In this document: positions 25,968-60,040 of the stretch, one piece after another
Position numbering within the stretch: position 1 is the first letter of the stretch
Layout of the letters: each line of letters opens with the position of its first letter
Origin: Mytilus trossulus
Lineage: Eukaryota
Direction: 5' to 3'
DNA: 64,000 bases
Assembly: GCF_036588685.1 (NCBI RefSeq)
Contig: NC_086374.1
Location: 35,588,001-35,652,000, forward strand
The notes under the pieces: generated by a model
Seen by the model: only the letters and a program-made list of their open reading frames with translations
The model's database searches: none
Told to the model about the DNA's origin: nothing
Made by a program: the position numbers and the translations under genes

Positions 25968-26245
25968 CTAGGTCCTTTTGTAAGTAATAACATACTCTGG
26001 ATAGCACATATTTAGTTCATAAACAAGAAATTCTCGGAAATTCCAGTGTCCGTCCACAACAACGGAATCATAGAACCAGTTCCCGGCTTGATCATGTGAC
26101 CTGTCACTACAGCGATCGTTTCTGCAGGTTTTACAAGGAGGACGCTGAAAAACTTCTTTGGAATTCAGAACAAACATGTCCCCTAGAAGCATACGCAATA
26201 AAATCATTTTTTTCTCCGACTTTATATCCCTGGATTGTGGTGAAT
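25968..26245 (-). CDS. Claudin-PARP fusion gene A, exon 5 (PARP catalytic C-terminal half, catalytic Glu)
   Basis: Acceptor ttttttgtcag; KMILLRMLLG...RPPCKTCRNDRC....H...YDSV...REFLVYE...CYPEYVITYKRT*. Confidence 0.9.
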
Positions 26246-27826
26246 CTGACAAAAAAAGAAAATATATCACAAATAACACACGTGTTTCTGTTACACGAAA
26301 AGGAATCAAAAAATATTTTGGATAAACGTCAGATAGATATTAACCAAACAACATTTGTTTACCAAACCAGACGTTGGGAGTTCATTATAAGGGTTCAGCG
26401 ATGAGTTTACGCGTTTACAGTTTACATTTAAGGAAGTTCGCTACTCAGTTTCAAAATAATAAGCTTTTCATAACACTAGTATATATTGATACGGGTTTAA
26501 TAAAGGAACCAAAAAAGCAAAAAACATAAATATAGGTGCTTGTTTTCAAGATATTAGCTATTTACATTTTGCGGGAAACTGTTCTTAATTGATTTTTCAT
26601 CGCTTTATCATTGACAAGTTTATGTACTGAAAAACTGTAAAAAACATAACAAAGATTTAATGAATAAAGACAACAGTAGTATACCGCTGTTCAAAACTTA
26701 TAAATCCATGGACAAAAAACAAAATCGGGGTAACAAACAAAAAACCGAGGAAAACGTATTAAATATATAGGAGGAGAACAACGACACAACACTTAAATTC
26801 TACACACACAGAAACGGACAAAGCATCAGACAAAATCCCACGAGAATAACAAATATAACATCAACACCAAATACATGACTTTGGGATAGACAAGTACCGT
26901 GACACGTCTTAGCGCAACGTGAATTTACACTCTAAAGATAAGAGAAAACAAACGACGCAACGTTAAAATGTAACACATAGAGAAACGAACTATAATATAA
27001 CAATGGCCATATTCCTGACTTGGTACAGGACATTTTTTAAGGAAAAACTGGGGGGGGGGGGGGGGGGGGGGGGGTCGAACCTGGTTTTGTGGCATGCCAA
27101 ACCTCCTAATAAGGCTTTTACAGATGGCTTATAATTATACATATGAATGATTTATAAAAAGAAAAGTGATGGTCAATGGGCAACATTTTTTAAGGCATTT
27201 AAATGGAAAAAACAAAGGATTCCAAAAATCTGACAAAAATCTTTAAAACATGACAATCAAACATCATGAAAGATGATAGAATATTTGAAACAATGCTTAT
27301 TTACCAGAAGTCAAGATCCATGAATAGAAGAAGCATGAAAACGATTGACGATTGTTTTTGACATGGAGCAAACACACACACATAACAGGATTAACCTACC
27401 AATTATTTGTTTTTGATACTCAAACCTCCTATAATATAGGTCAAGGGGAAATATGGATTCAGTAAAAATGGACGATATAACTACACTTCAGAAAATCTGT
27501 TCAATTGAACTTGTGAGTTTTGCTATTCTGTCTAGACTTTTTTTTTTTTTTTTTTATATCTGTACCTTTTTTATATTTTGATTTTCAAGAGATTTTGAAT
27601 CGGGAGTACCTGTTGTAGGTTCTAAAAACACTGTTTTATCTCCCTTTACAGTGAGTTCTTCATATAAGTTTTTAGGATGAATCTCCTTTATATTCAATTC
27701 AAAACATTTGATTAAATAAATGAAAACCTTTTACATAAACCCTTAAATATACAGGGAAACAAGCTTATTAGTGGTATCCACATAATAACTAAACCTTAAA
27801 TTATACAGACAATATATGTTCCTCAC

Positions 27827-28477
27827 CTGCATACGAATCGCTCTTGGTACTACTTTCTGCAGCATACACAGCTGGACCAAACATTCCCCTTTTATTTAAT
27901 CTGGCATCTAGGCCTTGAGTAACGATAGCATCAACTATTTCAACAGGCGTACCATGAAAGAGATAATATTCATTTACTGCGGGATACACGTCTCTTAAAA
28001 GTATGTCTTCGGTTGTTGTTATTATCGGCCCTTTTTGAGCCTTGCCTGTCTGTTCCAGCTTATTTAAGACCACTCCTCTACCTACCTTTCGAAAAAGTTT
28101 TGCTCGATTTTCAGCATATTTTTCGAATAATGGAGCATTTTCGACTCGTTCGACTTTGATGACCTGTAGCTTTTTATAGACTAGCGGATCTATACCTTTA
28201 GCATCTCTACCCACCCCAACTAGATCCTCCTTCCAAGTCCTTTGAACAAGTTTATCGATAGCAGTTTTTTCTAATGTTGACGCAGGTACCAGATGAAATA
28301 AGGAAGACGGATTTTGAGCTATCCATTCATCAATTCGTTTTGAATTGTCAAACTTTGTCCAGTACTTTGGAGTTTTTATTGGTCTTTTAGCCAGCCATAA
28401 ATAGTGACTTGGAAGTGATGAGCTTGGTCTAGGTTCTTCCTTTTGGGAAATATAAACAACTTCCACTTTATTTTCTC
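27827..28477 (-). CDS. Claudin-PARP fusion gene A, exon 4 (linker + PARP catalytic N-terminal half)
   Basis: ttttag| ... GCAG|gtgagg, 651 nt, phase 1-1; KVERVEN, NEYYLFHGT, GLDARL..RGMFGPAVYAAESSTKSDSY. Confidence 0.92.
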
Positions 28478-28723
28478 CTAAAATATATTCATTTGCTTAA
28501 GAACTATTTTGTTCATAAATATAATAGAAATTCAAAAACATTTAAAATCCAATAGCATCAAATGCTAGCAGCAGTAATGACGGTTCCTAGATAGCCTAGG
28601 ATACTAAAAATCAAGGCCTGTATTAAGTAACATTTTATTTTCAGTAACTTTGATTGCATGTTCAATAACAACGGCGGTAAAAGTTGAACATGGATAAAAT
28701 ATAAACTTTTGAAGTCATCTCAC

Positions 28724-28882
28724 CTTGATAGCTCATTATTATGATAGCCAAACCTCCACACAAGTACAGGAAAAATGCAATAGTTGCACATGCGAATGAA
28801 CCAGAAAGTCTGTGATCTTTTAGCCAGTCTTCTTTGTGATATGTTCCGCCATATACACTGATACTAATCATTAGTAAAAATG
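28724..28882 (-). CDS. Claudin-PARP fusion gene A, exon 3 (TM3, ECL2, TM4)
   Basis: tttcag| ... CAAG|gtgaga, 159 nt; AFLLMISISVYGGTYHKEDWL...SFACATIAFFLYLCGGLAIIIMSYQ; same length as exon 3 of gene B. Confidence 0.88.
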
Positions 28883-30099
28883 CTGAAATTGTAAAGTATT
28901 ACGGAGTCAAGACTCAATTTTCGGACATGTTAATGTTTACTTATGACGTTTATTTTTGTTGCACTAATTCAGTGCTCCTGTTGTTATTTTGTCCCTTTTA
29001 TAAGTTATAGTTTATGTGTCTCCCTCAGTGTTAGTTTGTAATCCGATTTTTTTCCCTCTCAATCGATACTGTTGCCTTTAATTACACAAACATATTCTTT
29101 CTTCCTACTTTAACTTGTTATCGCATGTATTGTTCTTTGCTTCTGTTTTGTACATTGACTATGCCGAGATGTATGGGGAAGGTGTATGTAACAAAAAGCT
29201 ACAAATGAGACACTCTTCATACTGGGGATTTTATTTGTATGTAATATGTAAAGCATCCCTGCTTTCATTGCGATTCTAGGGTAATCAGTATTTAATGTAG
29301 GATAACTCCGTTCACATATATTTGTTAAGTATTTGGATGTAAACGCATTTTTTACCACACCTGCTTAGTATTGTTTTTTTCCCTATTGTACAATACATAT
29401 AATGATAAACATTTGTGGACGACAAAGTGGAGAATATACAAGACAGCTTTTTCGTCGCCCTAACGCTAATACGAATACTAAATATAAAGTAGTAGTTCCA
29501 GTAAGACCCCTTTTTGGAATATAAATATGGTCCGTTTTTGACACTACAATTCACATATATATCGGGTTCTAGCAGCAGCATTAAGTCAGACTAAAGTACT
29601 GAAATCTTCAAAAATTTAGCGTTTTAGTTATATTTTGGACGGTTTCCGTCATAAATGAAAGTGGCGGCATTTGTGTTCATTCTTAATATTGAAATGTAAG
29701 TTGTATTTGATGATAATACATAACATATATGAAGGTTGAGGATGAACACGAATGTGGCCACTTTCATGTTTGACAAAAAAAAAAACACCTGAAAAGGGAC
29801 ATTTTTGGCATATTTTATATATATGTTATATTTAATTGTTGTTATGGTCAAATAATTGTGATGGCTTTTATATAACAATGGCAATTGTGTTTTGTTTTTC
29901 ATTAATCTATTTTCATTATCATTGGTGGAATGAAATTGTGCACATATGAAAATCGTCATTTGCAGATTTTATACCACCGCTTAAGATTAAAGATTTTTCT
30001 AAAATGATCATACATATAAAGGGAAGTGGTCAAGGTAAAAACTACGTTATAAAACCAGCAAATAGAGTCTGCAAAACTTTCTAATGCACGTTTACTCAC

Positions 30100-30245
30100 C
30101 TGTAATCAAATACGACATCCACACTAGTTTGTTAATTTTTATGCTGTCTTTATATTTCGAAACACACATTGTCGATATGACAACGACAGCGCATCCGATG
30201 CAAACATTGACATTATTTGGAAGGCACTTGTAGTTTTAATCCATC
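30100..30245 (-). pseudogene. Claudin-PARP fusion gene A, exon 2 (TM2), frameshifted in this sequence
   Basis: 146 nt versus 150 nt in gene B. Begins GWIKTTSAFQIMSMF and ends in another frame CIGCAVVVISTMCVSKYKDSIKINKLVWMSYLIT; donor G|gtgagt; premature TAA at 30141-30139. Confidence 0.8.
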
Positions 30246-32419
30246 CTTTATTAAAAGACAAAAGTTTTAATTCAGACATTGTCTTTCGCCCATTCCATTT
30301 CGTTTCATTGCATCGACTTATACCATAGAATATGAAGGAAAATGCACAAAGACCTGACTCTTTGTTTTCCCGGGTTTAAAAATTAATTGATCAAACATAT
30401 TTCTCATATTAGTATATGCGTATCTTTATGAAAATAATTCTTATTCATATAAAAAAGAAGATGTGGTATGATTGCCAATGAAACAACTATCCACAAAAGA
30501 CCAAAATGACACAAACATTAACAATTATAGGTCACCGTAGTCTGTTTTTAAAATTATGATTAGAACATTAACTGTTTTGATGGTAATTGACGTTGATGGT
30601 GTCTTAGGTTTAACTTACATGACATGCATATGTAATTCTGATATTGTACGACATATTATCACCTGACCGAATAAAGTTTATTAACGGGGATAATATGCAA
30701 AAACACAATATTTCAATATTTCTAAAAATATGTTAATTCCTGAAATGTACATAAGCAAATTTGTCTGGCAAAAACCATAAATTGACAGCAATTGATATTA
30801 TTACAGTAATCAACATCAACGTATCAATAAGCCATTATTTACAACGTACAGCTTGTGTCGTTGCCCTTTTCCTATTTTAAGAAATCAAAGTAGCACAATA
30901 CAAAGATTTATTTACTTCCAATATTCAACCTTTAAAATGCTGTTACTTAAGACTGCATATAAATTAATAAAAAAGGTATATATAATAGATAGATAATAGA
31001 TTAATCTTTTAAATGAATGCAATATTTGTGTTATGATCAAATATTATGCAATTAACGGCAAAATCTTGAATTTAGCTATATCATCTCTATACAGGAATTT
31101 CTTACGATATCTTAATCACGAAGCAGGAGCTACAAAAGGGTGTCTCAAACTATTGCTATCGTATTTTATCCTCGCATAAATCTGTAATTAGAACATCCTT
31201 ACCACATAAAAGTAGATAATGTTTGATAAGGTATAAAATTTGATCTATACATTCTTCCCAAAATCTGAGATAATGGCTCTAGGAACAACATACAAAGAAA
31301 ATCAACTCTCTCGTGTTATCCACGAAGAAGCTAATTTCGATTAAAAGTGGAAATTTCTTGTTAAATTTTGTAGACACAATTCACATTATAATAATTACAA
31401 AATTGTTGTATAAAACTAACACTTCATTATTTAAAAGAGTAGTCTGTTAGCTATCCATAAATACCACTTTTATAAATTTTTGAGGGTTATAAAGAAAATT
31501 ACAGCATTTTAAAACTGGGGAATTGGAGGTAGAACATCTTTGTATTGTGCTACCCTTAAAGACATTTGTATGTTTTAACTTACAAAAAACATATACTTTT
31601 CAAACTTTTATGTCACCTAGAACGACAAGGTATAAACCGCAAGAGGTAAGGACTACTTTACGTTATAAATCCATTATATAAAGCGTTGTTATCGGACTAT
31701 CCTGGATAAATTGAAGGCATTTAACAAACTTTACAATCAAAACCAGAAGGTAGATATATATATATAGGTAACAGGAAGTTTACCAACGTCAGATCAGTTA
31801 CAAAATTTGAGTTATTAATTAATTTCTGGAGGACCGCTTGAAACTAGTATATCTTTCATCAATCGCACGATTTCCAAGTTAGATAAAAAGGAATGTGTCA
31901 TATACAGGAACATAAAACCATACATTTTCAAATTAATCGTAGTTAAATCAGGAATGAGTGAAGAGCACAAAAAAGATCATGTCCGAAAAAGAAGGTACTT
32001 AATATTTTCTTTTACAATGTATATAAGAGATTGACACAATTAGCCAGTTGTGTATATACGATCTATACAAACAAATGGATATCGAGTAAACTAAATAATG
32101 TGAAACACTCACTCCATTAAAACATACCACGAAAATTACCTCCAATGAAACGAAAAATTGTCTTTCTATTTTGAATTTTACTCGGAGTTCAGCATTTTTG
32201 TGATATTACTTTTTGTCCATTGGAAGCGAAAGATATCATTCTGTTTTACCTTATGAACTTAATGAAAGTAAATATTTTCCATACTTTGGAAAAAAGAAAG
32301 ATAACATCGATATCCTCCCTAGTATATGAAAATAAGGGTGAATCATTGTTTACAAAACTTTGAATTTACGAAATGCGAAGGATATTGTACTTCAGATGAC
32401 CTTAGCTCTATATTACAAA

Positions 32420-32660
32420 AAAACTCATCATAAACACCAGGACTAAAATTTAATATTTACGCCAGACGCGCTATTCGTCTACAAAAGACTCATCAGTGAC
32501 GCTCGAATAAAAAATGTTTAAAATGTCAAATAAAATACTAAGTTGAAGAGCATTCAGGACCAAAAATTCCTAAAAGTTTTCCCAAATACAGCTAAGGTAA
32601 TCTATTCCTGAGGTAGAAAAGCCTTAGTTTTGTTCAAAAATTCAAAGTTTTGTTAACAAA
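32420..32660 (-). repeat. Retrozyme-like fragment with hammerhead motif (32459-32504) in intron 1 of gene A
   Basis: Minus strand: gagcgtcactgatgagtcttttgtagacgaatagcgcgtctggcgt. Confidence 0.75.
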
Positions 32661-33159
32661 ACTTTCTGCAATCTAGACCACTTGGACACCTAGACTTAAC
32701 CAAAAATTAAAATTTTGGTGGCCTAGTGTTTTTTGTCTCTTATCATTCTTTTAAGAATCGCATTAATATCTATTTATGTTTTTATGATATATGTAGATAT
32801 TTTATTCCATGTGTTTATAAATGGTGACGCACTAATAAACTATCTATCTATATAATATATCTACCTTTCCTCGTCAGTAGAATCTAGAGTTTAAACACAG
32901 TACATGATAAATATATTAGGCATGAAGATGGAACTAAATATAAATACTAGTATATAGAAGTCATATGAATAATGGCGTAGGACTTAATACCATTTACCAT
33001 AAACGATTTGCACACTAGTAGATTGATATTAAATCTTTAAATTACTAAAGTAACATAAATCGAATTAAAAATAAATGATTTGCAGACTGAAAATAATATC
33101 TAAATTGTTATCCGACGAGTCATTCCCACGGAAAATAATGTCTAAGCATATTTCATTAC

Positions 33160-33430
33160 CTGGTGTGTCTTTTCCAAGAAAATTGATGATACTTTCACAA
33201 CATTCGAAGGAGCCTCGGTAGGAAGTCAGCATTGAGCAGTGATCCCAAAGTCCTTGTCGTGATGAATCTGATTCCGACCATGACGAACTTACTATACCAA
33301 GGACTATGAACAAAAATCCTACTGGTATTATAAAAATTGTTAGACGAACATTCAGTGGAAACTCAAAAAAGTTATCAGTTCCTTTAATGAGAGCGTCTGA
33401 CCAGGACATCGAATTTTCAACAACTGCCAT
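33160..33430 (-). CDS. Claudin-PARP fusion gene A, coding exon 1 (TM1 + ECL1 claudin signature)
   Basis: MAVVENSMSW...IFIIPVGFLFIVLGIVSSSW..S..SRQGLWDHC...ECC; donor CCAG|gtaatg. The start ATG choice is uncertain. Confidence 0.88.
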
Positions 33431-33899
33431 TTCATGAACGAATATCAATCAGTATACAAGGAACTAAATTTCTTTATCGCATACATTTCATCTACAAAAT
33501 TTAATTCAACCCTTATTACCTGTAATAAAACGACAAGATATATCAATTCTTTTTAAATTGAATGGAGACTAATTTATAAACTTGTATACTAGTATGCATA
33601 CTGAGTGATCATACAAAACATTGATGAGCAAATGTGACGACATAGTCATAACTATGGAACGAGATTGAAACGATCAGTCATCACGAAATTTACGTTAACA
33701 TACTTTTGAAACAATCATGTAATGGAGATAATCTTTCAAAATAGTTCTGATCTAGCTTTATAAGATAAACAAAACAAGAATAAATATATGTTAAAGAAAT
33801 CAAATTCAAAAGAAAATAAACAAACCATAAAAAAACACCAACTGCTACTCCGGCTAATATTGAACAATACTACAGTGAAATAGTGATTGCTATTTTGAG

Positions 33900-36800
33900 A
33901 GCCGATATCGAATTCTAACCCGGCAAACAATATGTAAAACATTTAAAACCGTATTGGACAAAAACTGTGAAAGAATATTATACCATTATGGGAATACAAC
34001 GTCGAAAATGGATTGAAAATGGCAAATTTCACGGCCGTAATAAAACATTTCAGTGATTACAAAAGCGCTAAATTGAATTTTAGAAAACAGCTTGAGCTAG
34101 CATATGAAAGCTTCATTAGTGAAATAAATCGTAAAATCGGATAATCTGTCGACTGTGAACAACGTTTTGTATGGTCTGTGATTAAAAATGGGCGCAAACG
34201 TGTATCGCATTGTCAACAATTAAATATTAGCGGTACTCAACTTATTTCTTCAGACGAAATACGTGACGGTTGGGTAACTCATTTCCAATCTGTATTCAGT
34301 TTCGATAGCAATTTGATCAACCCTGTAAATGAAAAGGCTGTCGATAATACTGTCAACGACTTGATAAAAAACTGTCCGTACAAACACAAACAAAAATATG
34401 GAGGAATTTACTTTCGACGAACTATATAAAATTTTCCGTGCAACAAATCTCTAGGGTTAGATGGAATCTGTTACGAACATTTGAAGTACGACGAAAAACT
34501 ACTCCAGCGTCATTTGTGCAGTTTGTTTAATCGTGTACTGGAAACATGCTACAGTAACTCTATATAAAGGTGGAAACAAATCAAAGTCTGATCCGAATTA
34601 TCATCGGGGAATTTCTCTACTATGTATCATATCAAAACTGTTTGAAAAGGCATTATATACTCGTTTACTATCGCTTCATCACAACTTTCCACACCAATCA
34701 CAAGTTGCCTACCAGAAGACATTATCTAGCACACATGCAAGTTGTAACATGCAAGAAGCCGTATACCATAACTTAGAGCGTCATAGCAATATTATCGTCA
34801 CACTTCTCGACAGCATGAAAGCATTTGATACTCTATGGCACAAAGGACTATAAGTTAAATTGCATATATACACATGGAAAAAAGTATTGCAACACCTTGC
34901 TTTTTTAAAACTTGAAAAATCAGCCTCTTTTTTTGGATAAAAAATAATAAAATATGTGTATAATATTATTGAAACATAGTTTATGATAACATTGGCATTG
35001 AAACGAACAAAACATGTTTGAAAAAAAAATGATTTATATAACCACAATTTTAATAGCAAAATGAAGTGTTTTTATGTACAAAAAAAAATGCATTTTACAA
35101 CGTTTACTGTAGTCGAACTTTACAATGTCAGACATTTCAAAATTAATCTTCAGATGACTGTTCACATCATAGTTGATCGTTATATGCCAAAGAATTAGTA
35201 CTTTGTGCGCAGCCTCCATTCAAACGAATAACCGCATCTAAACGTCTTCTGATTCCTGCGATAAATCGACTAATTTTCTGCTAAGGTAGCAGCAACCATT
35301 TTTGATGAAGGGTATTGTTTATTTCATGATGTGTTTGAACTAGGGTGTCCTTTCGCGCACTTTCCGCCCAATAGTGTCCCAAATATACTCGATATGGTTC
35401 AAATCCGGGCTACGATCGGGACAAGGAAGATGAGCTGAATTCCATTTGAACATTGGATCTTCCTTCACGATGCTAATTTCCAACTCTGGCGAGCTCTGCA
35501 CTACATTGGATACGGAAAACTGTATGTCTGTTCGTTAGCAAAAGTCTCCGAAATGGTCTTATCGCACGATAACTAGTAGCGATGAGTCGATCTTGAACAG
35601 TTCTTGTTAAAAGGCTCCTGTATGACCACCACTCTTTTTTTTTGGATTGTCTTGTTTGTAATGGGTTTCCTTCTGACCAACCTTCATTATGCTTGATTTT
35701 CCCTATCAAATGGTATATGAGGGTCTTCGTTATCTCGGAAGGTCTAACAGCGTTTATTGCCTGATTTTTTATTCTCAAAAAGACTTATAGTGGAATGGTG
35801 ATATCCAACAATACGTGCAGTTGTAACATTGACATCCCTGCTTCTCTTATGCTGATAATATGGCATCTTGCTGCAGTTAAGAGTTGTCAAGGACCCATTA
35901 CAAGGTGTTAATCACATAACTTTAAAAACTTGGTTATTTAAAGTGTTGAAAACAATGAGGATAAAAAACATCTGGTTTGCTGTTTACGGGAACAGTAGCT
36001 GCATGCGCAGATAAAAACTTATCGAGTCGATGTTTATTGATTAAACTCAGGTGATACTTAAATAATGTTTAACTGGTTCTATTTTACCAAATTATATCAC
36101 AAAAAAATAAAGAGCGTTTTTTTTAATTTCAATTTCAATTTGGTGTTGCAATACTTTTTCCAATGGGTATTTTTGGAGTTCGGGGTTTAACTTGGTGTGG
36201 ATTTATGAAATGAACCAGAACATGCGAAGCTGTGTGCAATTTAAAGGAAAGTGTTCAAAATGGTTCGAACTCAAAAGAGGCGTAAGACAAGGCGGGATAC
36301 TGTCTGATGTTTTTTATTTAGTGTTCATTAATAATCTTCTTAGACAATTAGAAGAAAATCCTTATGGAAGTATGCTCTTCAATCTTCGTGTAAGCAGTAC
36401 CGTACAAGCGGACGCCATTGCTCTTATATCTACAACATCAAAATGTATGAAAACTTTAATAAACACTTGCCAAACATATAGCGAAAATTGGGGCTTCAGA
36501 TTCTCATCAGCAAAAAGCGAAGTACCGAAATTTTGTTCTTCAAAATGTGCTACCATCAGTCAACCATTGAAACTTTACGGGGCGGACATTCCAGTTGTAA
36601 CATCAACCAAGCATGTTAGAAATATATTAAATGCCGAATTTATTTAAGAGCATGTTAAGAACTTTAAATGCATGCCGAATTTTGCGTGCAACTGCGTTAT
36701 CTGTAATGAAATCCGGAATGCACCCGTCCTTCCTTAATCCATTGACGTGCTCCAAAATAGTATTTCAGATGTGTTATCCAAAGGCAATGTTTGCTTGTGA

Positions 36801-36960
36801 CCTTTGGTATGGTCTTTCAAATACTGAATTTTCAATGTTAGAACGTTCTCACAAATATATTTGTAAAATAATTCAAGGGCTTCCTGCACGAACACGATCC
36901 GACAAGAGCACAAGCCTACTCGGTTGGCTTTCTGTGGAGTGCTATATTGACAAGTGTAAG
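33900..36960 (+). mobile_element. Decayed non-LTR (LINE) retrotransposon RT, split by a Tc1 insertion
   Basis: KSLGLDGICYEHLK, LYKGGNKSKSDPNYHRGISLL, LLDSMKAFDTLWHKGL (to ~34868), then GVRQGGILS..F..FINNLL and VQADAIALI (from ~36170). Confidence 0.85.
34871..36167 (-). mobile_element. Internally deleted Tc1/mariner DNA transposon, copy 1
   Basis: TA-flanked TIRs cacatggaaaaaagtattgcaacacc / ggtgttgcaatactttttccaatggg; transposase remnant RSPDLNHIEYIWDT on the minus strand. Confidence 0.88.
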
Positions 36961-37524
36961 ATTGTTGGATTTCTTATCTCGAAAACAAGCACATCGATCC
37001 CTATATTTTTTTTGCTTTTTGGATTCCTCAATTTATTCCCTATCAAAACATACTAGTTTTATGAAAAGTTATTTATTTTGAAACTGAGCAGCGAACATCC
37101 TTAAGAGCGAAGCTTTGGGAGGACTTAAAATAAGTATAAACACGAGTATGTTCAGTGTGTATCTAGACAATCTAACGTCATCCACATTCACAGCAACACT
37201 TTTGTAATGTTATACGGAATATGATCTAGATAATGATAACAATATTTATTTCTCAAAAACTTGTATTACACATGTTCAACGAATGTGCAGCGTTATTTAT
37301 AACAGTTAACTTAAAAATTAATATGTGACATTTAAATCATTTAATCTCTCTAATGTCTTAATTCAACATGTAAATATTATTATTGTACAAACATTGTTTA
37401 ATACATGCAAAATCTTCGATAATAAGGAAATAAAGTAAATATATAATGATTCACGCTTATTAATAAAAAACAATCAGATTCAATAGTAATCAAAAGAGAA
37501 TAACGAAAATGAAACAATAGTAGT

Positions 37525-38039: not shown

Positions 38040-39158
38040 TCAAATATCTGTGGGAATGTGGCATTTCTTTTCAAGTATCCAGTGTGTTAAATTAAATTTA
38101 ATGCCTCGTTGATACCCTATATTTAGTTTTTCACAAACAGAACAATGAAGAGTTTGCAACATCTCCTGCTGTGAATACGAGCTTGAGAAGAACTGATCTT
38201 TTGCTTTCAAATAACTAGTGTACAAACGTTCATCACTTCCCACATGTTTTAGATACAAAGCTAGTTCTTTAGGTGTTGAAAAATCTAATGTGGAGATATA
38301 TGTACCTTTTGGTAAAATGTTTCTTACATTCGGAGCTCCTCGGTACACTGGAATAAGGTCAAAACCATCCTGATAGAACCGGTATGCCTTTTCAGTGACA
38401 TAGTCATCACAAAGAGAGTTTTCAAATGCCAAGTAAAATTTATATACTTTACTTAAATCGTTGAAACAGGAGTCATCATTCCAAGGAGAAGAACACTTTT
38501 TACCACACCCTCCAAACACGTCAACATCTATTGTTTTATCCATCTTCTTAACATATGTGTTCCTCTTTGATACAGCTTTACAATTGCTTACTACCCAAGC
38601 AACATTTTTTATCTTTTGAAGGAAAATTTGTGTGTAGTTTTTTTCAGATTGTATTTTTGTTCTTGCCAGTAGTCCATACGGAAAATATATATCAGCATCT
38701 GATCTATAGCTGAGTACCCAATCAAATTTATTGTCCCATTCTTTTTTTATAAAGTTTTTGTTTGTATATGCTTTAGATTCAACAGAAATGAATACCCATT
38801 TCTGACTGAATGACTTATTTGGAACCTTACCATTAAGGCTAGTATGATAAAATAACACAGCATCGCTTTTACTAAGTGAAGTTTCATTCGATGCTACATT
38901 AATCTTGCAATTCCTGAAATTACAATTCCTAAATTTGTATTTGAGCAGACCTGTTGGTATCACGTGGGGTCGTTTATTCCATGTTATTGAATATATTTTC
39001 TTGTATACATGTTTATCTGTAATTACTACTGCCTTTGTTTTTACCAACTGTAGCGGAAAGATATTATCGAAATAACAACTGACGAAAAGAATGCCAGTGC
39101 CAATTGACATCAATGTTAAAAGTCCATAATACATAATTGTGGTCTGAGAAAAGCGCAT
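38040..39158 (-). CDS. Alpha-1,3-fucosyltransferase, GT10 family, 372 aa, single coding exon
   Basis: N-terminal type II TM anchor; SDAVLFYH, WVFISVES, SYRSDADI..PYG, VAWVVSNC, VDVFGGCG, YKFYLAFENSLCDDYVTEK, PKELALYL. Confidence 0.95.
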   Translation of the reverse strand: MRFSQTTIMYYGLLTLMSIGTGILFVSCYFDNIFPLQLVKTKAVVITDKHVYKKIYSITWNKRPHVIPTGLLKYKFRNCNFRNCKINVASNETSLSKSDAVLFYHTSLNGKVPNKSFSQKWVFISVESKAYTNKNFIKKEWDNKFDWVLSYRSDADIYFPYGLLARTKIQSEKNYTQIFLQKIKNVAWVVSNCKAVSKRNTYVKKMDKTIDVDVFGGCGKKCSSPWNDDSCFNDLSKVYKFYLAFENSLCDDYVTEKAYRFYQDGFDLIPVYRGAPNVRNILPKGTYISTLDFSTPKELALYLKHVGSDERLYTSYLKAKDQFFSSSYSQQEMLQTLHCSVCEKLNIGYQRGIKFNLTHWILEKKCHIPTDI

Positions 39159-49700: not shown

Positions 49701-49744
49701 TCCACACCCTGCGAGTTCTTGGATGGGTAAGAAACTAAACTCGT

Positions 49745-50513: not shown

Positions 50514-50748
50514 ATGTCTCAGAGCGAAATAAAAAACTCTTTAATTGTTGGAATAGACAATTTCTTTCAATTTCCTTTGCGTGTCCGAATGACAACAGCA
50601 ATAATTCCAGTAGGACTTATTTTCCTCATCGGTGGATTAGCTAGTCCGTCGTGGTCAAGATCAGAATTGTCTCAACTTGGACTGTGGAAATATTGTATAT
50701 TTTCTGACATATTAACTTGCTGTAATAATTTACCAGGCGGGTCACCAG
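50514..50748 (+). CDS. Claudin-PARP fusion gene B, coding exon 1 (TM1 + ECL1 claudin signature)
   Basis: MSQSEIKNSLIVGIDNFFQFPLRVRMTTAIIPVGLIFLIGGLASPSW..S..SQLGLWKYC...TCC; donor CCAG|gtaagg; 235 nt. Confidence 0.9.
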
Positions 50749-52907
50749 GTAAGGTTGATAAAAAGTTTATTTTATTTTATCTGTTTAAACGTGACTGTTG
50801 AAAAGGTATATTTTGCACAAACTTAACGGATTTCTACGCGCATTTCCATTATTTATTTCACTATTCTATATCCAAAAATAAAATATTGAAATTATCGTTT
50901 AGAATCTTCAAAGTTTTGTACAATGCAATTCGCTTATATTTTCAATAATCAGATAAACCATACAATATAAAAAAAGAAGATGTGGTATGTTTGCCAATAA
51001 GACAACTCTACACAAGAGACCCAAAATGACACAAAAAATAACAACTATAGATCACCGTTCCTTCAACAATTTGCAAAACCCATACCGCATAGTCATCTAT
51101 ATAAGGCCCCGAAATGACAATGTAAAACAATTAAAACGAGAAAACTAACGGCCTAATTTATGTACAAAAATTGTACGAAAAACAAATAAGTGACACATAA
51201 ACAAACGACAACAACTGAACTACACACTCGTGACTTGGGACAGGCACATACATACAGAATGTGGCGGTGTAAAACCTTGATCAACGAAAACCATGCACTG
51301 GTGGTATTTATGCTACGTGTGTTCGAATTCCAAAACATAGATAAACTAACATGTTTAACCCCCACATTATTTATGTATGTGCTTGACCCAAGTCAGGAGC
51401 CTGTAATTTAGGGGTTGTCGTTTGTTTATGTGTTACATATTTGTTTTTCGTTCATTTTTTATATGGTGTTACATTTTTTGCAATCACTAAGATGTCTGAT
51501 CAATCAATAGGCTATTCCACACTTTCACTACTCGGTTAGTTAAGAGTATTTTCTTTTTTCTAATCTGCCTCTGTTTCTAACCAATATCATCGAGTTGCCT
51601 GTTGTTGTCGAGCTTGTAATACAAATAAATAAACCTTATGTACACTCGAGTCATATACCCCTGTTGTTAATTTGTAGGTACCTGTCAATTCGCCTCTTAG
51701 CCTTCTCAATTTAAAAGTAGGAATTTCATAATTATCTATGGTTCTTTGTTTGAGTGAGCCTTGAGGTTGGGTAACACTGTTGTTGCTCTACGTTGGACGT
51801 TTACAATTGTCTCCATAGCTCTCTCTCTGTGTGGATTCAATACACTACTGTCATATTCAAGATGAGGACGGGCTAAGGTCTGAAATAGTAGACAGAAGCT
51901 TTTATAGTATGGATATTAAAAAAGTCCTTCTAAAATTTCAAACTAGTTTGTTTGCTTTATTGAATTGTGTCTGTATATGTTTATCCTACACAACTGAACT
52001 GTTTCTAGTGTGATTTCAGATCCATCGTATGTCGACATTTTATACTTGCTTTCTTGCACATAATTGGATTTGGTAGAAATTGGTAGAACTTTGCATTTGT
52101 CCGGATGGAAACATAAAAGCCTTTTTCAACCCATTTGAACTATTTATATCAATTTTCATTATGGAGTTGTCAATGTCGCTATGTAAAGATCTATACAGTG
52201 TCGAGTCATCTGCAAATATTCATTTTATTCTACTTATGAAAGAAAAAACATTGATTAGTTATAAAGACTTCGAGACTGACAAGGTATTGTAAACGTCAAC
52301 GGCCAAAATAAATTGAATTAGTGCAATATTAATTTCTTTTGTTGGAAAGAAATATGCTTATCAACAATAACTCATGTTAAATGCTTAGTACGAATCAAGT
52401 TGCGAATTTAATTTTTTAATAGCAATTTACTCAGTGCTCATAAATACAGTAATCTAATTTTGTACACTGTAAAAATCGCGATTAGAAATTATTCACATGT
52501 ATTTCATGTTTATTTCAAATCGTGTTTAGAATTGTATTTAATATCTAACCAAATGTCTCAGTGAGAACATTACATGTAAAAATGTTTTGAATTTGAACAC
52601 TTTTAAAAGTGTTTTATATTCTCAAAAAGATCCTAAACACAATCTTAAACACAACCTTAATATGTTTAGAAGAAGGGCAAAAGATACCAGAGGGACAGTC
52701 AAACTCATAGTTCGAAAATAAACTGAAAACGCCATGGCGAAAAAAAAAAAAAAAAAAAAATAGAACTGCGACACATTTGGACCAAAACGTGAAGACCTAT
52801 AAGTAAAAAAAAAGTGCACAAAATGTTTGTTTAGAACTATTCTTAGGTTCTAAATACTTTTTTTATTATTTATTAACAGATTTGCCTTTAAAAGCTAATT
52901 TTTGCAG

Positions 52908-53057
52908 GATGGGTAAAAGCAACAATAGTATTTCATATCTTTGGGATGTTTGGAGGAGCTGTTTGTCTCTTATTTACCATATTTACAATGTGTGTCTCGA
53001 AGTTCAAGTTTCACACTAGAGTCCATCATGCCATTTGGATAAGCAGCGCACTTACAG
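52908..53057 (+). CDS. Claudin-PARP fusion gene B, exon 2 (TM2); not in the ORF track
   Basis: tttgcag| ... ACAG|gtttta, 150 nt; GWVKATIVFHIFGMFGGAVCLLFTIFTMCVSKFKFHTRVHHAIWISSALT; homologous to 30100-30245. Confidence 0.87.
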
Positions 53058-54185
53058 GTTTTATTAAAATTTATTTGATCGCACATGTTTGTGGACATTG
53101 ATTGTCATCGTGTAAATCACTATAGATCGAAAACAAATACAAGATGTTTTTCTAGGATAAAACATCTTAAATAATTATATATGTCACGCTCTTATTTTTC
53201 TGAAACTCAATGAATGCTCCATTAACTTTATCATACGAATAAATATATTTATCCTGCAATAGGGTGTTCTACTATACAGATACAGCCCTACAGATATCGC
53301 TATGCTGTATCTGTAAACTATACTGAATGAGATATTGTTTTAAAGCTCCGCCCACTGAACTTGAATGTGTATGATTGTGTAACAAAAACAACTATGTCGA
53401 CGTCAATTTCAGCATGCATGTTTAGCAAATTTCAGTTCTGAAGCGTAGAACAACTCGTACACTCCTGTTTCAAATTGGACAATGTTTTGTTATTTATTTT
53501 TACTGTTGAAATTAGTTGTTATGTTAAAATAGATAATTTTTCACCTTGAGCGATGTATCATTGTTGACCATTCGAGGTTCTCGAATGTGTGATTAATGTA
53601 TCGTACTACTACACGGACCTCAGGGGATTTCAAATCGAAAATAAATGCAAAACATGTGTTTTTGTGTCTTTCAAAACAGAAATAATATACAGAAATTGCA
53701 GGAAAAGACAATACTGTTTAGTGTCTTTATATATCAGCTGTGTTTGAACTCGGCTAGAAACAGGTGTAGTATCTCGCTAAAAGCTCGCATACACCTAATA
53801 TTTCAAGACACTAAAACAGTTATTGTCTATGTACCGGCTTTCTGAAGAGAGTGTATGCGTCAATGCAAATCGTGTATCAAAATTAATCAAATCATATCAG
53901 AAACTTATTTATAGTCGCCAATTAATAACCAAAAACATAATCTCTTTGAACTTTTATAACCAACAAGTGCATACATATACAAAATATACTTACATAATAG
54001 ATATATAAGCATAAAAATCATACAACACATTATTTTAAGCACAGTAAGGCATTGCTTAATTAGGTTAGATAGGGTAAACGCAATAATACACATCGCATGC
54101 ATGCATGCATGAATGAGGATTGGATACGTAAGCTTAAATTTGTTTATAAAACAGAAAATGAATAAACAAAGACGAAGGAATACCG

Positions 54186-54800
54186 GTGCTTTGCTTTTGC
54201 GCCAATTGGCCTTTCATTTGCGCCCAAAACATCTTTCATTTGCGCCACAAACAATATTTCATTTGCGCCAAAATAAAACCTTTCAATTGCACCAATATTA
54301 CAGGTAAATACAGGTAATAGTATAAAACATATATATTTAGAAAAAAAGACTATTGATATAAATTAAAGTTTGTATCATTGATGTATTCATGTCTGAAAAA
54401 TTCCTGCTCTCAAGTGCATACCATATTGATAAAAGATAGTCCGTTTTTTCATGAACTGCAGTCCATTTCAGTTGTTATACTGGCTTTGCAAGGTTTTATA
54501 TATTTGGGGTACAAATAAACGACTTGGTTTCCATTTTTCAGAACGTATGGTCTGTAAACTCACCCCTATTATAAACCTTAGTGACTCTCGGCTTCAGAAA
54601 TGAGTGTGGCATTGAACTCACCAAATTATCCAGAGAAATACTGTAGAGACAAACCTTTTTGAGTAATGCATATTTAACGCTTCCGTTATTGTTTACCTGA
54701 ATTACCTGAAAAATGGCGCAAATGAAGTTTTTATTTTTTGGCGCAAATGAAATATAACCTTCTGGCGCAAATGAAAGATTGTAATTTTCAAAAATACTAC
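54186..54800. mobile_element. Foldback/MITE-like element with inverted subterminal repeat arrays
   Basis: Several ttcatttgcgcc(a) motifs on the left (54210-54270) and tggcgcaaatgaa motifs on the right (54714-54775); boundaries approximate. Confidence 0.6.
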
Positions 54801-55174
54801 TGGACTCCTTTCCAGACGGACTAAATCAGGGCGAAATGAAAACGTGAGTGTATCCTTTTGTGTATGCATTAGCCGCCATCAAATCCAGACAAAAACATGT
54901 CAAGAAAGGGAACAATAAATTTTCATAGCAAACCATCATCCTGGAAATTAGAATCCAAAACTGTTAAAAAGTGTTTTCCTGAGTTGAAGATTGTTGTTTG
55001 TTTGTGTTAAAACTAAAATTGTTATACGTTGCACATCAGTGTCCCTGAATACGTTCATGAAAAAGTTGGAGTCATACAGAAACAAGCAAGCAGCCATTCC
55101 TTTGTTTAAATGATCCGTAAAGAAATTTTTATATATTAATGCTTGGAAATGATACATTCCTAAATATTTTGTAG

Positions 55175-55333
55175 TATTTTGTCTTGCAATTAGTGTGGGG
55201 ATATTCAGTGCAAACTACCACAAAGAATCCTGGTTGAGCGGACATTACACATCTGCTGGTTTTCATATAACTGTCTGCGCATGTGTTGTTTTTTTAGCTA
55301 TATGTGTAGCTATGCTTATTTTTAGTTTCCAGG
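55175..55333 (+). CDS. Claudin-PARP fusion gene B, exon 3 (TM3, ECL2, TM4); not in the ORF track
   Basis: ttttgtag| ... CAGG|gtaagt, 159 nt; VFCLAISVGIFSANYHKESWLSGHYTSAGFHITVCACVVFLAICVAMLIFSFQ. Confidence 0.9.
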
Positions 55334-55533
55334 GTAAGTAGTCATCAGTTAATATACACATGTTAGCATAGTTGTTTTAGTAAATGTATTAACGTATTTC
55401 AATTAAATGAAAACTTTTAACACCGTAGTCAGTACCAACAATTGACTTGCAAAGAGTAAACCTAAACATAAATATGCCAAAATTATTACATCTTCAAATT
55501 TGCGATAGCAAATAAAGCCGCACATTTTTGTTC

Positions 55534-55625
55534 TTCCCTCAGCGGCTTTCGAACCCTTGCGTCTGTGGCATCGTGGCAAAACCACCTGCAACGTGCACAG
55601 AACCATAGACCACTCGACCACCTAG
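55534..55625 (-). mobile_element. Possible tRNA-derived SINE head
   Basis: Minus strand has A-box-like tggtcgagtgg and B-box-like ggttcgaaagcc; no clean cloverleaf. Confidence 0.4.
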
Positions 55626-56081
55626 TCTACATAAAAATAACGCTTTCGGTGTTCAATGTAGTCTATCCTCGATCATGGCTTTATCTAAGGTAGTTACACA
55701 GTAAATGATTATCGTGGCACGACGATTGTGTACTTTTCATGGCAGCTATTTTTGTCTGTCGTAAAGGTCGATAATGCAAATTGCTATGCCAGCCGCAAAA
55801 TCACATTTTAATTTTATTTTACTCGCCTAATATGTGACACCTTTATGACACACATTCTCCATTGGATAACACGTTGTTATACAGGGCTAACACCATATTT
55901 GAAGAATTCATCTCAAATTTATCCCATTAATGTTAGATATTCAACATTTTGCTTTTGCAAAGTTTTGTTCTTCTCTCAGCTGGATTAATCCCGGATGGTA
56001 TCTTTTACAGAATCTATCTATTGTATTCATTGTTAATTTGTTCCAGTGGCAAACATGCATGAAATATTTTTCACTTGTACG

Positions 56082-56471
56082 ATGATGAGTTTATTTACAA
56101 CCACTGGGTCTATGCCACTACCACTGTTGGAGATTTATTTTTCCAAGGGTATCAGAAGCCCAGTAGTCAGCACTTTTTGTGCTGACATGAACAATCATTG
56201 ATATGGTTGTATTTATAATTTAACTGTTTACAAAAGTTTTAATTTTTTGAAATACTAAGGCTTTCCTACCTCAGGAATAGATTACTTTAGCTGAATTTGG
56301 CAAACTTTTTAGGAATTTTGGTCCTCAATGCTCTTCAACTTCGTATTTTTTCCTGCCTTTTTAACTTTTTTGGATTCGAGCGTCACTTATGAGTCGTTTG
56401 TAGACAAAACGCGCGTCTGGCGTACTAGTATATAAAAAATTTAGTCCTGGTATCTATGATGAGTTTATTTA
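56082..56471 (+). repeat. Full-length ~374-nt retrozyme-like monomer with terminal redundancy and a mutated hammerhead (56378-56423)
   Basis: atgatgagtttattta at both 56082 and 56456; gagcgtcacttatgagtcgtttgtagacaaaacgcgcgtctggcgt. Confidence 0.78.
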
Positions 56472-57373
56472 TATTTGCAAATTTGCACTTCCATAAGAGG
56501 AATTGAAACTTTGCTTCGGTGACATCGTGTTAACACAACTGTACTTCTGTATGAGAGGTTGTTCAGGATGAAGGTTTAGGAAATTTAGACTGCCAGTGGA
56601 ATTTAACGTTTTTGGAAAGGGACAGACACCTTGCAACAGGACATCTACGGACCCCCCAAAGAGTTGTTAAAAGGGTTCCCAACGTGCAAAAAGTGTGGCA
56701 AACTCTGTGGCTGCGTACGAGTAATCATCACACACGGCCAGAAGGACGCCCACGCTTTTGCAAGGGTTTTACTGCAGGTCTTTCATATAGTTCACATATC
56801 ATACACTTATCTCTATAACTAGTATATACTTATTGATTTTGTGTAAGATTAAGAAGATTTTCCTGTTATCTTGCACTTTATAAAAAAACCTCTATCATAA
56901 GTTAACATGTCTGAAATATTTTACATTCCAAAACAATAAAATGTAGAAAGTAGGGTATATAAGTATACATCAAGAAATTACTAATGGCCAAATATTCAGG
57001 CGAAAACTGCTATGCTATTGCCATTGGTGCCATTTGGATGAAGGTCGACAGATTTTTAAACGGAATATTTCCTGATCCACTGACTAGGGATCATTCCAGT
57101 GATTTGTTTTCCGATCACTAAAAATTTTATACACGTAAAGTCGTTGATGTTGTGATGCGACTGTCTGTAGTGTTGGTTTACTGAAAGAGAACGATTTTGT
57201 TTATTTACTCAAGTGGCCATTTGCATGTTTCTGCACGAATTATTTGGGACTACGAATTAATTCATTCATAAAAACACAAATATTTCGCAGTGTACATTTA
57301 GTATAACATACGATTTTGTCAATAAAGAAAGTCATTTGTTGAACTGAAATATGTTGTTTTGGGTTTATTACAT

Positions 57374-57374
57374 G

Positions 57375-57405
<31 letters not shown>

Positions 57406-57413
57406 TAATAATA
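57374..57413. repeat. (AAT)n microsatellite
   Basis: taataataat... run with one interruption. Confidence 0.9.
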
Positions 57414-57515
57414 AAGAAGTAAAAGATTTTTAAAGTAAAAAGACAAGAACAATTTATGAAGTAACGACACATAAAAATCAAACAATATGATATTTAAAGA
57501 TATTTTGATTTTTAG

Positions 57516-58094
57516 GCCACAATAGAGTGCAAGACATTTTTAATAACATGACACCAATCAACTGGACCAAATACAATCAAGAAAGAAGTTTAGAAGCTTG
57601 GCTTTCACATATTGATCATGGGCTGGACAAAATAGAAATCAACGAAGCATCAGATAGAGAAAAAGACGCAATAGTGCAATTGATACGTCGTACATGGAAA
57701 CCCCATTTGGCTGGCAAAGGTCGTGACGCGCAACAAAGTGGATATTCACAAATGAAAGTAGTGAAGGTCGAAAGAATAGAAAATCCATCTCTTTTTTTGA
57801 AATATGCCCAGAATAGACAACATTTGCTTCGTCGTCTTGAAACTTCAAATCGACAATTTGAATTCTATGGAATGACAAAGCAAAGACCAATCGAAACAAC
57901 CGCAAACATGAACAAGAATGTATTTACAGATATACATTCTGAAATAAATGAGCATTACTTGTTCCATGGTACTTCAGATGCTACAGTTAGCGCCATTGCA
58001 CATGGTGGCCTAGATGCACGCTTAGCACGCGATGGTATGTATGGGCGAGGAATTTATGCGGCAGAATGTCCAACGAAGAGTGACCATTATGCAG
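57516..58094 (+). CDS. Claudin-PARP fusion gene B, exon 4 (PARP catalytic N-terminal half)
   Basis: ttttag| ... GCAG|gttatt, 579 nt; KVERIEN, NEHYLFHGT, GGLDARLARDGMYGRGIYAAECPTKSDHY. Confidence 0.92.
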
Positions 58095-59282
58095 GTTATT
58101 ATTTATCTTTGTAAGATAGATGTTCGTAATACGAATCAATTGTAACATACATGTACATGTAAATGTATATGAAATTAATGATAACCAAACATACCGCAGT
58201 CATCAAATTATCTACCCCCACCCCATGCACCCCCAAATGGTGAAATTATAGATGCCTTGTATTCTTGTTTTTATTTGTTTAAATAATTATAGATTATCGT
58301 TGATTATCTCAACGAGATTGATTTTCTCGCTTGAGCTGGTACAGCGAAAGTGAGAAAAGCAATCGAATTGAGATGACCAATGATAATCTGTTTATCGCTA
58401 TTTTACCTATGACGACGTTGTCAATTTCAATGTCAATTTCCTTAGCAACGCCACGTGGCCTCCTTAGTTTCTAGCGATAATTTTCCATCTCAAGCGAGAA
58501 GCATGATATGAAAATTATCACAAAAAAAGATCAAAGGAAAAATGCACAAAATAGCGATAAATACTTATACATTAATAAGAACACTAATATAACACAAACA
58601 GACATAATGAAAATGTAACATTAAAAGAATCATAACAACAACAGCCGTATAAACATACAAAACAACTGATTAACCATTCAAATCAAACATACAAATCAAT
58701 GCCGTGTGTTTTTTCATCAATGCGTCGCGCGGAGGAAAAATTTTAAATATTCAAGTTTGAAGCATGAATGAATCATCTTGTCGTCTGCAAGTTTAGACTT
58801 AACATATAAAAATTTTCAAAACAAAAAAAAATTTGCACCGGCACCTTTCTTTCGAAAAATGTTCGACAAGAATTATTTTTTCTAATGAACAATAATTTTG
58901 TCTAAACCTGCAATTTTAAATTCTATTCAGGAATAGGACTGTACACAGATGAGTTTTGATATATGTTGCTTCCATACGAACCGATCATCATGTTCTATGC
59001 ATACAGATATTATACAATCAAAACATGTGTATGAAGCCGATATAATACGTATTGACCTAAACCAAAGGCTACACCTGTTAAATTATTAATCAACAACTTT
59101 TGCATGAACAGTGTAACATCGGTAATTTCTAGGATATATTTAAGTAACACACCTGTGCAATGTACTGTTTTTGTCTATTTCAGCTCATTTGATTAAATCG
59201 TCGTCATGCTCTGATTGATTATCGATAAAACGATAATTTGTCTATCAAAAGTCTGAACTGACTGTAAAATATCGAATATATA

Positions 59283-59724
59283 CACTTGAAAAAAAGGATT
59301 GCAACACTTCCATTGTAAACAATGTAAAATGCCAAGATTGTCGAATATGTGTATAAATTTAGTTCTGCTAAATATTTTTTAACCATTTATGGTTTCAAAT
59401 TGAGTTCATTGTATCAACTTACTTTTCATCTACTATTTATGCTACATGGTTATGACATAACAGCTACACTCAAATATTTTTTGCGCTTTTCACAAAAAGT
59501 ACTTATTTTGCAGGACTCATTTTTTTCCAAAACAGTGGTTCTGCAGCAAATACAGATTTTAACGCATGAAACTCATTCAGAACTCTTTGAATATAATTTA
59601 ATAACACAAATTGTAAACCATATACGAATCAAAGTATTTGGTAAAACCCAAATTATACACATTCTAAAATCACGTCATTTTACATTGTTTTCAATCGAAG
59701 TGTTGCAATTCTTTTTTCAAAGTG
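59283..59724. mobile_element. Tc1-type MITE in intron 4 of gene B
   Basis: ta|cacttgaaaaaaaggattgcaacactt ... aagtgttgcaattcttttttcaaagtg|ta. Confidence 0.82.
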
Positions 59725-59765
59725 TATATTTACTAATTGTATTAAAATTGTTCAATATTTTTTAG

Positions 59766-60040
59766 GTAAAGATATGTTTAACCTTAAAATAATAGTAGTG
59801 CGCATGCTTCTAGGTGAAGTTTTTGTTACCAATGTCGGATACGCGTTCCAAAGACCACCTTGCAAACAATGTATAATGCAGGCTGGACATCTCGGTTTGT
59901 GTAACAATTCGGCTCATAAACAGGACATGTTTGACTCGGTCATGGGGGCTATTCATGGAAAACACAGAGAATTTATAACTTATGAACAAAACAGCTGTTC
60001 GAGTTATCCAGAATATATAATAACTTATAACAGAGAATGA
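59766..60040 (+). CDS. Claudin-PARP fusion gene B, exon 5 (PARP catalytic C-terminal half, catalytic Glu)
   Basis: ttttag|GT AAA GAT ATG; KIIVVRMLLG...RPPCKQC......LC....H...FDSV...REFITYE...SYPEYIITYNRE*. Confidence 0.92.

Follow-up and report, generated by a model that had tools for sequence, protein, structure and literature searches.

To our knowledge, PARP16 is the only well-known membrane-anchored PARP, and proteins of the PMP22/claudin type are not known to carry enzymes. PARP16 (ARTD15, a tail-anchored protein of the endoplasmic reticulum) has a C-terminal transmembrane (TM) region, and a survey of PARP architectures mentions only two membrane cases, this anchor and a sponge 'PARP12-like' protein of clade 3 in which an N-terminal transmembrane domain is combined with PARP (PMC4245714). 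Here, we describe two genes, A and B, in a stretch of 64,000 nucleotides (nt) from the mussel Mytilus trossulus (assembly GCF_036588685.1, contig NC_086374.1, positions 35,588,001 to 35,652,000); the whole stretch is referred to as the window, and positions are given within it. Each gene joins a four-helix membrane (4TM) domain of the PMP22/EMP/MP20/claudin family (PF00822) to a PARP catalytic domain. We consider it probable (roughly 0.8) that A and B belong, as old paralogues, to a mussel 4TM-PARP family that arose by exon shuffling followed by duplication, gene B being intact and gene A expressed.

The locus resembles the described membrane systems only in part. PARP16 likewise has a PARP domain tethered to the membrane with the enzyme in the cytoplasm, a placement that is predicted for A and B; however, it has a single C-terminal TM helix, belongs to clade 6, and is a structural match at a Z score of only 12.2, whereas the anchor of A and B is an N-terminal four-helix domain. 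The sponge protein, which we compare by its description, is said only to have a 'transmembrane domain' and is not described as a PMP22/claudin tetraspan. Like members of PF00822, A and B have four TM helices, a W..GLW..C..C motif in the first extracellular loop (ECL1), and a short basic intracellular loop, but the known members are proteins of ~160-220 amino acids (aa) with short cytoplasmic tails, and our literature search returned none with an enzymatic C-terminal domain. The tails of claudins proper end in a PDZ-binding motif. In A and B, the place of such a short tail is taken by a PARP domain of ~280 residues that ends in ..ITYKRT (A) or ..ITYNRE (B).

On the enzymatic side, the nearest sequence relatives of exons 4 and 5 are macro-PARP paralogues (PARP14/PARP15/PARP9-like) of Mytilus, part of a group expanded in bivalves, which have exon boundaries, intron phases, and the RTW..G.GRDA motif in common with A and B; unlike these relatives, A and B lack macro, RRM, and KH domains and have the 4TM module in their place. 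Human PARP14/15 have Leu instead of the Glu of the catalytic His-Tyr-Glu (H-Y-E) triad, whereas 4TM-PARPs keep the Glu. The best structural match of the PARP module is to tankyrase 1/2 (PARP5a/b), with a root mean square deviation (rmsd) of 1.8-2.1 over ~192 residues and 28-29 % identity; the triad and the YPEY(L/I)ITY C-terminal strand are shared, but 4TM-PARPs have neither ankyrin repeats nor SAM, and their N terminus is a membrane domain. The zinc site of tankyrase presumably lies elsewhere than the Cys/His motif that follows RMLLG..RPPC in A and B. The 4TM-PARP combines two known families in a new architecture. Databases contain it as uncharacterised models and, as far as our searches reach, no published work describes such a fusion.

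Exon models of both genes were made by reading splice sites by eye and by six-frame translation (Table 1). The coding sequence of gene B totals 1398 nt and encodes 465 aa without interruption; it corresponds letter for letter to RefSeq XP_063419915.1 (P0168), 'uncharacterized protein LOC134705076 [Mytilus trossulus]'. In both genes, exons 1 to 3 encode the 4TM domain and exons 4 and 5 the PARP catalytic domain. All eight introns across A and B are of the GT-AG type, in phase 1, and at equivalent codons, with ..P|G|W.., ..T|x|F.., ..Q|G|.., and ..YA|G|.. at the junctions in both. A preliminary description of this DNA had proposed four introns at equivalent positions and an exon 3 of 159 nt in both genes, which the exon models bear out, and had listed nine motifs, all of which six-frame reading places where it had put them in A and in B. 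It had also called the proteins very diverged, and amino acid identities between A and B are indeed 51, 37, 42, and 49 % for exons 1, 3, 4, and 5. A difference in ECL1 length, likewise proposed, amounts to 8 residues by which the loop of gene A is longer. The arrangement was said to be head-to-head at ~17 kb; the genes are divergent and their start codons 17 kb apart, but they are not strictly adjacent, since an open reading frame (ORF) of the GT10 family and a fragment of a long interspersed nuclear element (LINE) lie between them.

Table 1. Exons of genes A and B and the features lying between the two genes (window positions)
Feature	Position	Strand	Description
Gene B exon 1	50514-50748	+	DNFFxFPL (cytosolic N terminus), TM1, ECL1 W..GLW..C..CC; donor CCAG|GTAAGG in phase 1; P0168 residues 1-78
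Gene B exon 2	52908-53057	+	150 nt; TM2 and basic intracellular loop TMCVSKFKFHTR; 98 % identity with M. galloprovincialis/edulis proteins
Gene B exon 3	55175-55333	+	159 nt; TM3, second extracellular loop (ECL2; YHKESWL), TM4; phase-1 donor; 98-100 % identity across Mytilus
Gene B exon 4	57516-58094	+	Linker, helical N-terminal part RTWK..GKGRDA, first half of PARP: His in HYLFHGT, Tyr in GIYAAE
Gene B exon 5	59766-60040	+	Second half of PARP; Cys-rich loop C-x2-C..C..H, Glu in REFITYE, YPEYIITY, stop codon
Gene A exon 1	33430-33160	-	Start codon at 33430, DNFFEFPL, TM1, longer ECL1
Gene A exon 2	30245-30100	-	146 nt; 4 nt below the 150 nt of gene B
Gene A exon 3	28882-28724	-	159 nt; TM3, ECL2 (YHKEDWL), TM4
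Gene A exon 4	28477-27827	-	Linker and first half of PARP
Gene A exon 5	26245-25968	-	Second half of PARP; C-x2-C-x4-C-x4-H, Glu in REFLVYE, YPEYVITY, stop codon
GT10 alpha-1,3-fucosyltransferase ORF	38043-39158	-	Between A and B, not a family member; intact single exon, 372 aa; Glyco_transf_10 E 5e-44, Glyco_tran_10_N E 2e-16
LINE-type reverse-transcriptase fragment	36192-37056	+	Between A and B; two abutting ORFs, the first with an RVT_1 match

The introns of A and B had been described as having no similarity beyond repeats, and a blastn comparison agrees: it returned two intronic stretches only, both very high-copy by read depth. Because nucleotide sharing is limited to these two repeats, we regard the A/B duplication as old, and because amino acid identity is ~40-50 % and no exon-level nucleotide match exists, synonymous sites between the two genes are taken to be saturated. 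The only nucleotide matches to gene B introns (50965-51058 and 56225-56473) are held by 30416-30609 and 32356-32743 in the introns of gene A. These two stretches and a third at 29446-29833 reach summed depths of 1e5 to 4e6 in DNA runs and are present in RNA runs, as very high-copy mussel repeats.

Direct evidence that the two modules of gene A are transcribed and spliced together comes from contigs of four public runs (X4, X9, X11, and X24) placed on 27700-33500. X11, an RNA library by our guess, stems from a near-identical animal (its gene A exon 4 differs at 3 of 650 letters), and X24 is a declared RNA-seq run with another organism code. Record 1 of X11 (1394 nt) aligns to 30100-30244, then 28723-28882, and then 27827-28476; it is free of introns, corresponds to predicted exons 2-3-4 of gene A, and spans the 4TM-to-PARP boundary. 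About 400 of its letters extend past exon 4, consistent with exon 5 and a 3' untranslated region, while only 31 letters lie ahead of exon 2, so that the contig documents the junctions from exon 2 onwards. X11 and X24 RNA contigs on 28723-28882 agree with gene A exon 3 to within one letter; one X24 contig covers exactly this exon, with both ends continuing, and another starts exactly at the 3' edge of exon 4. An RNA contig over exon 1 (33225-33479) has no differences. RNA depth is near zero in most nonrepeat intron bins of gene A, the exception being 32938-33131 beside exon 1, where a depth of 4.7 may reflect unspliced RNA or DNA carry-over.

Other animals also have single-ORF transcript contigs that encode a 4TM-PARP: P0193, ascribed to a more distant mussel, is an ORF of 473 aa on a 1.8-kb Logan contig, and P0121/P0159 encode 459/490 aa. 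One could suppose that the fused ORF is an artefact of gene prediction in which a tetraspan gene was joined to a neighbouring PARP gene, given that the B-type proteins in databases are computational models and that PARP-only models of 203 aa from M. edulis fall into the same 90 % cluster. Such an artefact is largely refuted for gene A by record 1 of X11, which crosses the exon 3-4 junction. In addition, the uninterrupted fused ORFs of P0193 and P0121/P0159 lie on contigs of 1.8-2.8 kb that must be spliced mRNA, and in neither A nor B does exon 3 close with a stop codon ahead of its consensus donor. A prediction artefact is thus highly improbable, and we treat the fusion as genuine.

The fusion is maintained in related species. 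Gene B is 92 % identical to a 465-aa protein of M. edulis and 87-88 % identical to 463-aa proteins of M. edulis and M. galloprovincialis. Fused models of 463-465 aa are thus present in three Mytilus species. A comparison of these B-type sequences at the protein level gave identities of 91-98 % for the 4TM part, 84-89 % for the PARP core, and 67-89 % for the Cys loop, which is the least conserved segment. M. edulis has two B-type lineages, one of 465 aa (92 % to M. trossulus B) and one of 463 aa (87-88 %; P0167/P0168 versus P0001/P0155), and the accession numbers of its 203-aa PARP-only models (P0151/P0156) are consecutive with the 463-aa gene; the lineages and the short models might be explained by deep alleles, additional copies, or an incomplete tandem duplication. 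For gene A, seven of the eight coding differences listed are synonymous, in a list that is partial and consists of the best-supported rows, not picked by coding effect; the nonsynonymous one is an R-to-M change in exon 4, seen in X4 only. If about one-quarter of random changes are synonymous, the chance of at least 7 of 8 is near 4e-4. Gene A is under purifying selection.

The assembled sequence of gene A is nevertheless broken. Its exon 2, at 146 nt, is not a multiple of three, and the frame breaks near 30195-30215: the frame entered from exon 1 gives WIKTTSAFQIMSMFAS before a premature TAA at 30141-30139 ends it, while the frame leaving into exon 3 reads ..GCAVVVISTMCVSKYKDSIKINKLVWMSYLIT. 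The 4-nt shortfall is seen relative to exon 2 of gene B, to exon 2 of a stand-alone 4TM paralogue (150 nt in each), and to the 49-residue equivalent in P0193. Gene A might accordingly be viewed as a decaying pseudogene, with B as the sole functional member, in which case the argument from two preserved copies would fail; our database searches found no annotated A-type protein from any Mytilus genome, as this view would have it. However, 145 window positions of exon 2 correspond to 149 letters in record 1 of X11, an RNA contig, and a stretch of 175 window positions corresponds to 179 letters in record 25 of X9, a DNA contig that stems from a second organism. With these 4 additional letters exon 2 would be back at 150 nt, which argues that the frameshift is not general. 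The other exons of gene A are open, RNA contigs of two organisms are correctly spliced, the differences listed above are mostly synonymous, and P0193, an orthologue of the A type, retains an uninterrupted ORF in a transcript contig. We therefore consider decay quite unlikely and conclude that gene A is a live gene whose shortfall is either a null allele private to the animal sequenced or a fault of the assembly. The notion of two preserved copies holds for gene B, which is intact, and for all other exons of gene A, but not for the reading frame of gene A in this assembly.

Among the alternative acceptors and donors considered for gene A, a single in-frame rescue was found, in which a phase-0 GTAAGT inside TM1 is joined to an AAG|TGC acceptor. 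This splice would delete ECL1, and it was rejected, since the RNA contig uses the canonical exon 2. The frameshifted gene A is a possible functional polymorphism of the presence/absence type, which has been reported to be common in Mytilus.

The identity of the membrane module could be deduced from P0193, which scores 41.5 bits (E 1.7e-10) with PMP22_Claudin (PF00822), where the cut-off is 26.7, over positions 7-160 of the 161-position profile, and which also passes the PARP cut-off. The exons of gene A are 56-67 % identical to this protein, and those of gene B match it at E 1e-10. In the ESM Atlas, the nearest clusters of residues 1-185 of B belong to PMP22/EMP/claudin families at 0.92, the top one being molluscan, and the clan is shared by all 10 of the 10 best matches; a search with the whole of P0168 gave no large cluster of the fused architecture, and its best score of 0.80 is a lead only. 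Helices are predicted at residues 3-21, 58-90, 96-124, and 135-160 of the P0193 model. The ECL1 motif reads SWS..GLWKYC..TCC in B and SWS..GLWDHC..ECC in A, and all aligned 4TM-PARPs have W47, G56, L57, W58, C61, C69, and C70. As read from the sequences, Lys and Arg abound in the TM2-TM3 loop and in the segment that follows TM4, while ECL1 has an acidic character, a distribution that fits the usual claudin topology, in which both ends and the PARP domain would be cytoplasmic.

The PARP module was recognised in the window itself. The Pfam PARP profile (PF00644, cut-off 26.7) matches exon 4 of B with 44.8 bits (E 1.3e-11) and exon 4 of A with 41.4 bits (E 1.5e-10), and it matches the database proteins P0168 and P0193 with 50.6 and 68.4 bits; exon 5 of gene A alone gives E 0.0026, below the cut-off. 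Across the aligned 4TM-PARPs, the triad residues H332, Y362, and E443 (numbered as in P0168) do not vary, with Glu in the context REF[IL].Y[ED], and the corresponding motifs are HYLFHGT, GIYAAE, and REFITYE in B and YYLFHGT, AVYAAE, and REFLVYE in A. The Glu was assigned to the triad position by anchoring to the YPEY strand of PARP12 and by the fold match, not by residue-level superposition. By sequence, PARP12 and tankyrase are the closest solved relatives, and exon 5 by itself yielded no more than a chance match when searched against the PDB sequences. A structure model of P0193 built from a 113-sequence alignment had a mean predicted local distance difference test (pLDDT) score of 82.8, with the PARP part above 90; an earlier AlphaFold model with 10 sequences (pLDDT 35) was set aside. 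The best structural matches of the model were tankyrase 2 (Z 22.6, rmsd 1.8 over 192 residues), tankyrase 1 (Z 21.7), PARP15 (Z 21.0), and PARP10 (Z 19.6), and all top Foldseek matches were tankyrase. Searches of P0168, P0001, P0193, and P0121 gave no Pfam match to ankyrin repeats, SAM, or macro domains, and the module therefore resembles tankyrase in its fold only. It is predicted to be catalytically active. A C-x2-C-x4..9-C-x4-H pattern after RPPC (59852-59935 in B, 26144-26090 in A, residues 403-440 of P0168) is kept through the whole bivalve PARP family, and this loop, which falls in the most variable part of the B-type proteins, with 67-75 % identity, is a candidate zinc or other metal site.

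Both modules have relatives elsewhere in the genome from which their origin can be traced. Exon 4 of gene B has at least 16 genome matches, its own included; the mapped relatives have upstream macro domains, and their source names are PARP14-like, PARP15-like, and PARP10_14_15. Paralogues with macro domains include P0010, P0013, P0019, and P0233, among others, and in P0233 (LOC134696370) the PARP exon has a phase-1 acceptor, CCAG|GT, and a phase-1 donor after ..YA, as in A and B. Two further 4TM paralogues, with a GIDNFV N-terminal motif, lie on the same chromosome (C2:21855131-21858918 and C2:51025041-51029095). In the one at 21.855 Mb, the exon lengths of 150 and 159 nt recur together with the phase-1 junctions, and TM4 is directly followed by a consensus donor, beyond which a fourth exon may lie; no PARP exon was found within 20 kb downstream. 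The paralogue at 51.025 Mb is likewise without a PARP exon nearby. The occurrence of phase-1 cassettes in both modules is a classic setting for exon shuffling. We propose that a 4TM cassette of three exons, with a phase-1 donor at its end, became linked to a two-exon PARP cassette that starts with a phase-1 acceptor and stems from the bivalve macro-PARP expansion, and that duplication of the fused gene preceded the separation of Mytilus from the animal with P0193. A separate Logan protein, P0201 (418 aa), has the PARP module joined to two ubiquitin-like domains, and it may be another sign of free shuffling of the PARP cassette.

In a maximum-likelihood tree of exon 4, gene A grouped with P0003 (92/82, ultrafast bootstrap/SH-aLRT), an exon-4-only ORF of the A type that is ~55 % identical to gene A and 72 % identical to P0193; this group was sister to the B clade with moderate support (90/52), and the stem branch of gene B was very long (0.99). 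Exon 4 of P0193 is 56 % identical to A but 41 % identical to B. Since P0193 is of the A type, the A/B split would be older than the divergence of Mytilus from the P0193-carrying animal. A third type, P0121/P0159, has the same architecture with a weak N-terminal motif and does not occur in this genome, where its best match is 46 %.

Several observations weigh against a single old family with a membrane module of the PMP22/claudin type. Taken singly, the 4TM exons of the window give only a Claudin_2 match at E 0.024 (gene A exon 1), below the Pfam cut-off, and P0168 has no claudin-clan Pfam match at E <= 0.1. ECL1 is modelled at low confidence (pLDDT <40 in the P0193 model). The structural search gave no specific 4TM match, with residues 46-166 matching only generic helix bundles at Z scores of 8 or less; for this reason, we file the module under PMP22/EMP/MP20/claudin and not under claudins proper, so that the preliminary label 'claudin' is supported by P0193 at the level of the family (PF00822). 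Direct RNA evidence comes from the A type and the P0121 type, the B type being represented by gene models only. In the phylogeny, the PARP exon of A is 44-46 % identical to some macro-PARP paralogues and 42 % identical to that of B, the SH-aLRT support for A-B sisterhood is only 52, the PARP domain of P0121 groups with the PARP14-like paralogue C12_48.0M/P0086 (96/90), and a single clade of all 4TM-PARPs is only just not rejected by the approximately unbiased (AU) test (p 0.085).

More than one 4TM-PARP fusion event is therefore possible. In the extreme case, A, B, and the P0121 type would be independent captures of the PARP cassette by different 4TM genes with no common fused ancestor, which phase-1 cassettes on both sides would make easy and which the phylogenetic observations just listed would favour. 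On the other hand, the best tree joins A and P0003 with B at an ultrafast bootstrap of 90, the low identity between A and B can be attributed to the long stem branch of B, and one 4TM-PARP clade survives the AU test. Genes A and B also lie 17 kb apart and have the same junction codon and a common DNFFxFPL motif (weaker in P0159). Independent capture thus appears unlikely, and we prefer duplication of a gene that was already fused. In the preliminary description, the fusion had been taken for a real, maintained gene family and not a chance adjacency; the spliced RNA of gene A, the ORFs of P0193 and P0121/P0159, the gene models from three species, the 7:1 excess of synonymous differences, the 91-98 % conservation of the 4TM part in B-type proteins, and the tree (90/52) lead us to the same conclusion.

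What a 4TM-PARP does in the cell can be suggested from its parts. The tetraspan would anchor the enzyme and, because both ends of a claudin-type tetraspan face the cytoplasm, the catalytic domain would be kept at the membrane on its cytoplasmic side, with access to NAD+. There it could ADP-ribosylate membrane-proximal proteins, while input and substrate specificity might depend on the variable ECL1 and the fast-evolving Cys loop. In vertebrates, macro-PARPs evolve rapidly in host-virus conflicts. Given this precedent and the derivation of the module from the macro-PARP expansion, our best guess, made by analogy, is a role in membrane-proximal innate-immune or stress signalling. It is conceivable, if doubtful, that these proteins are receptor-enzyme PARPs of the plasma membrane, in which the claudin-type loop senses a cell-contact or pathogen cue and the H-Y-E domain writes ADP-ribose, possibly poly(ADP-ribose); we know of no such form of PARP signalling in any model organism. 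An expressed and conserved tetraspan-PARP with an H-Y-E triad would constitute a new way to localise ADP-ribosylation to the membrane. The locus also offers a clean case of domain shuffling by phase-1 exon cassettes within a lineage-specific, fast-evolving PARP expansion, and XP_063419915.1 and its orthologues provide a concrete protein for research on ADP-ribosylation and bivalve immunity.

Two further ORFs of the window lie outside genes A and B. On the minus strand, 15947-16900 encodes 317 aa with a subthreshold PTB/PID_2 match (E 1.7e-4, 22 versus 25.4 bits) and may be an exon of an adaptor-protein gene. On the plus strand, 11454-11855 is an ORF of ~8 tandem 16-residue (48-nt) units, AFYPQSYHKLISQHWL, a minisatellite that stays open by chance.

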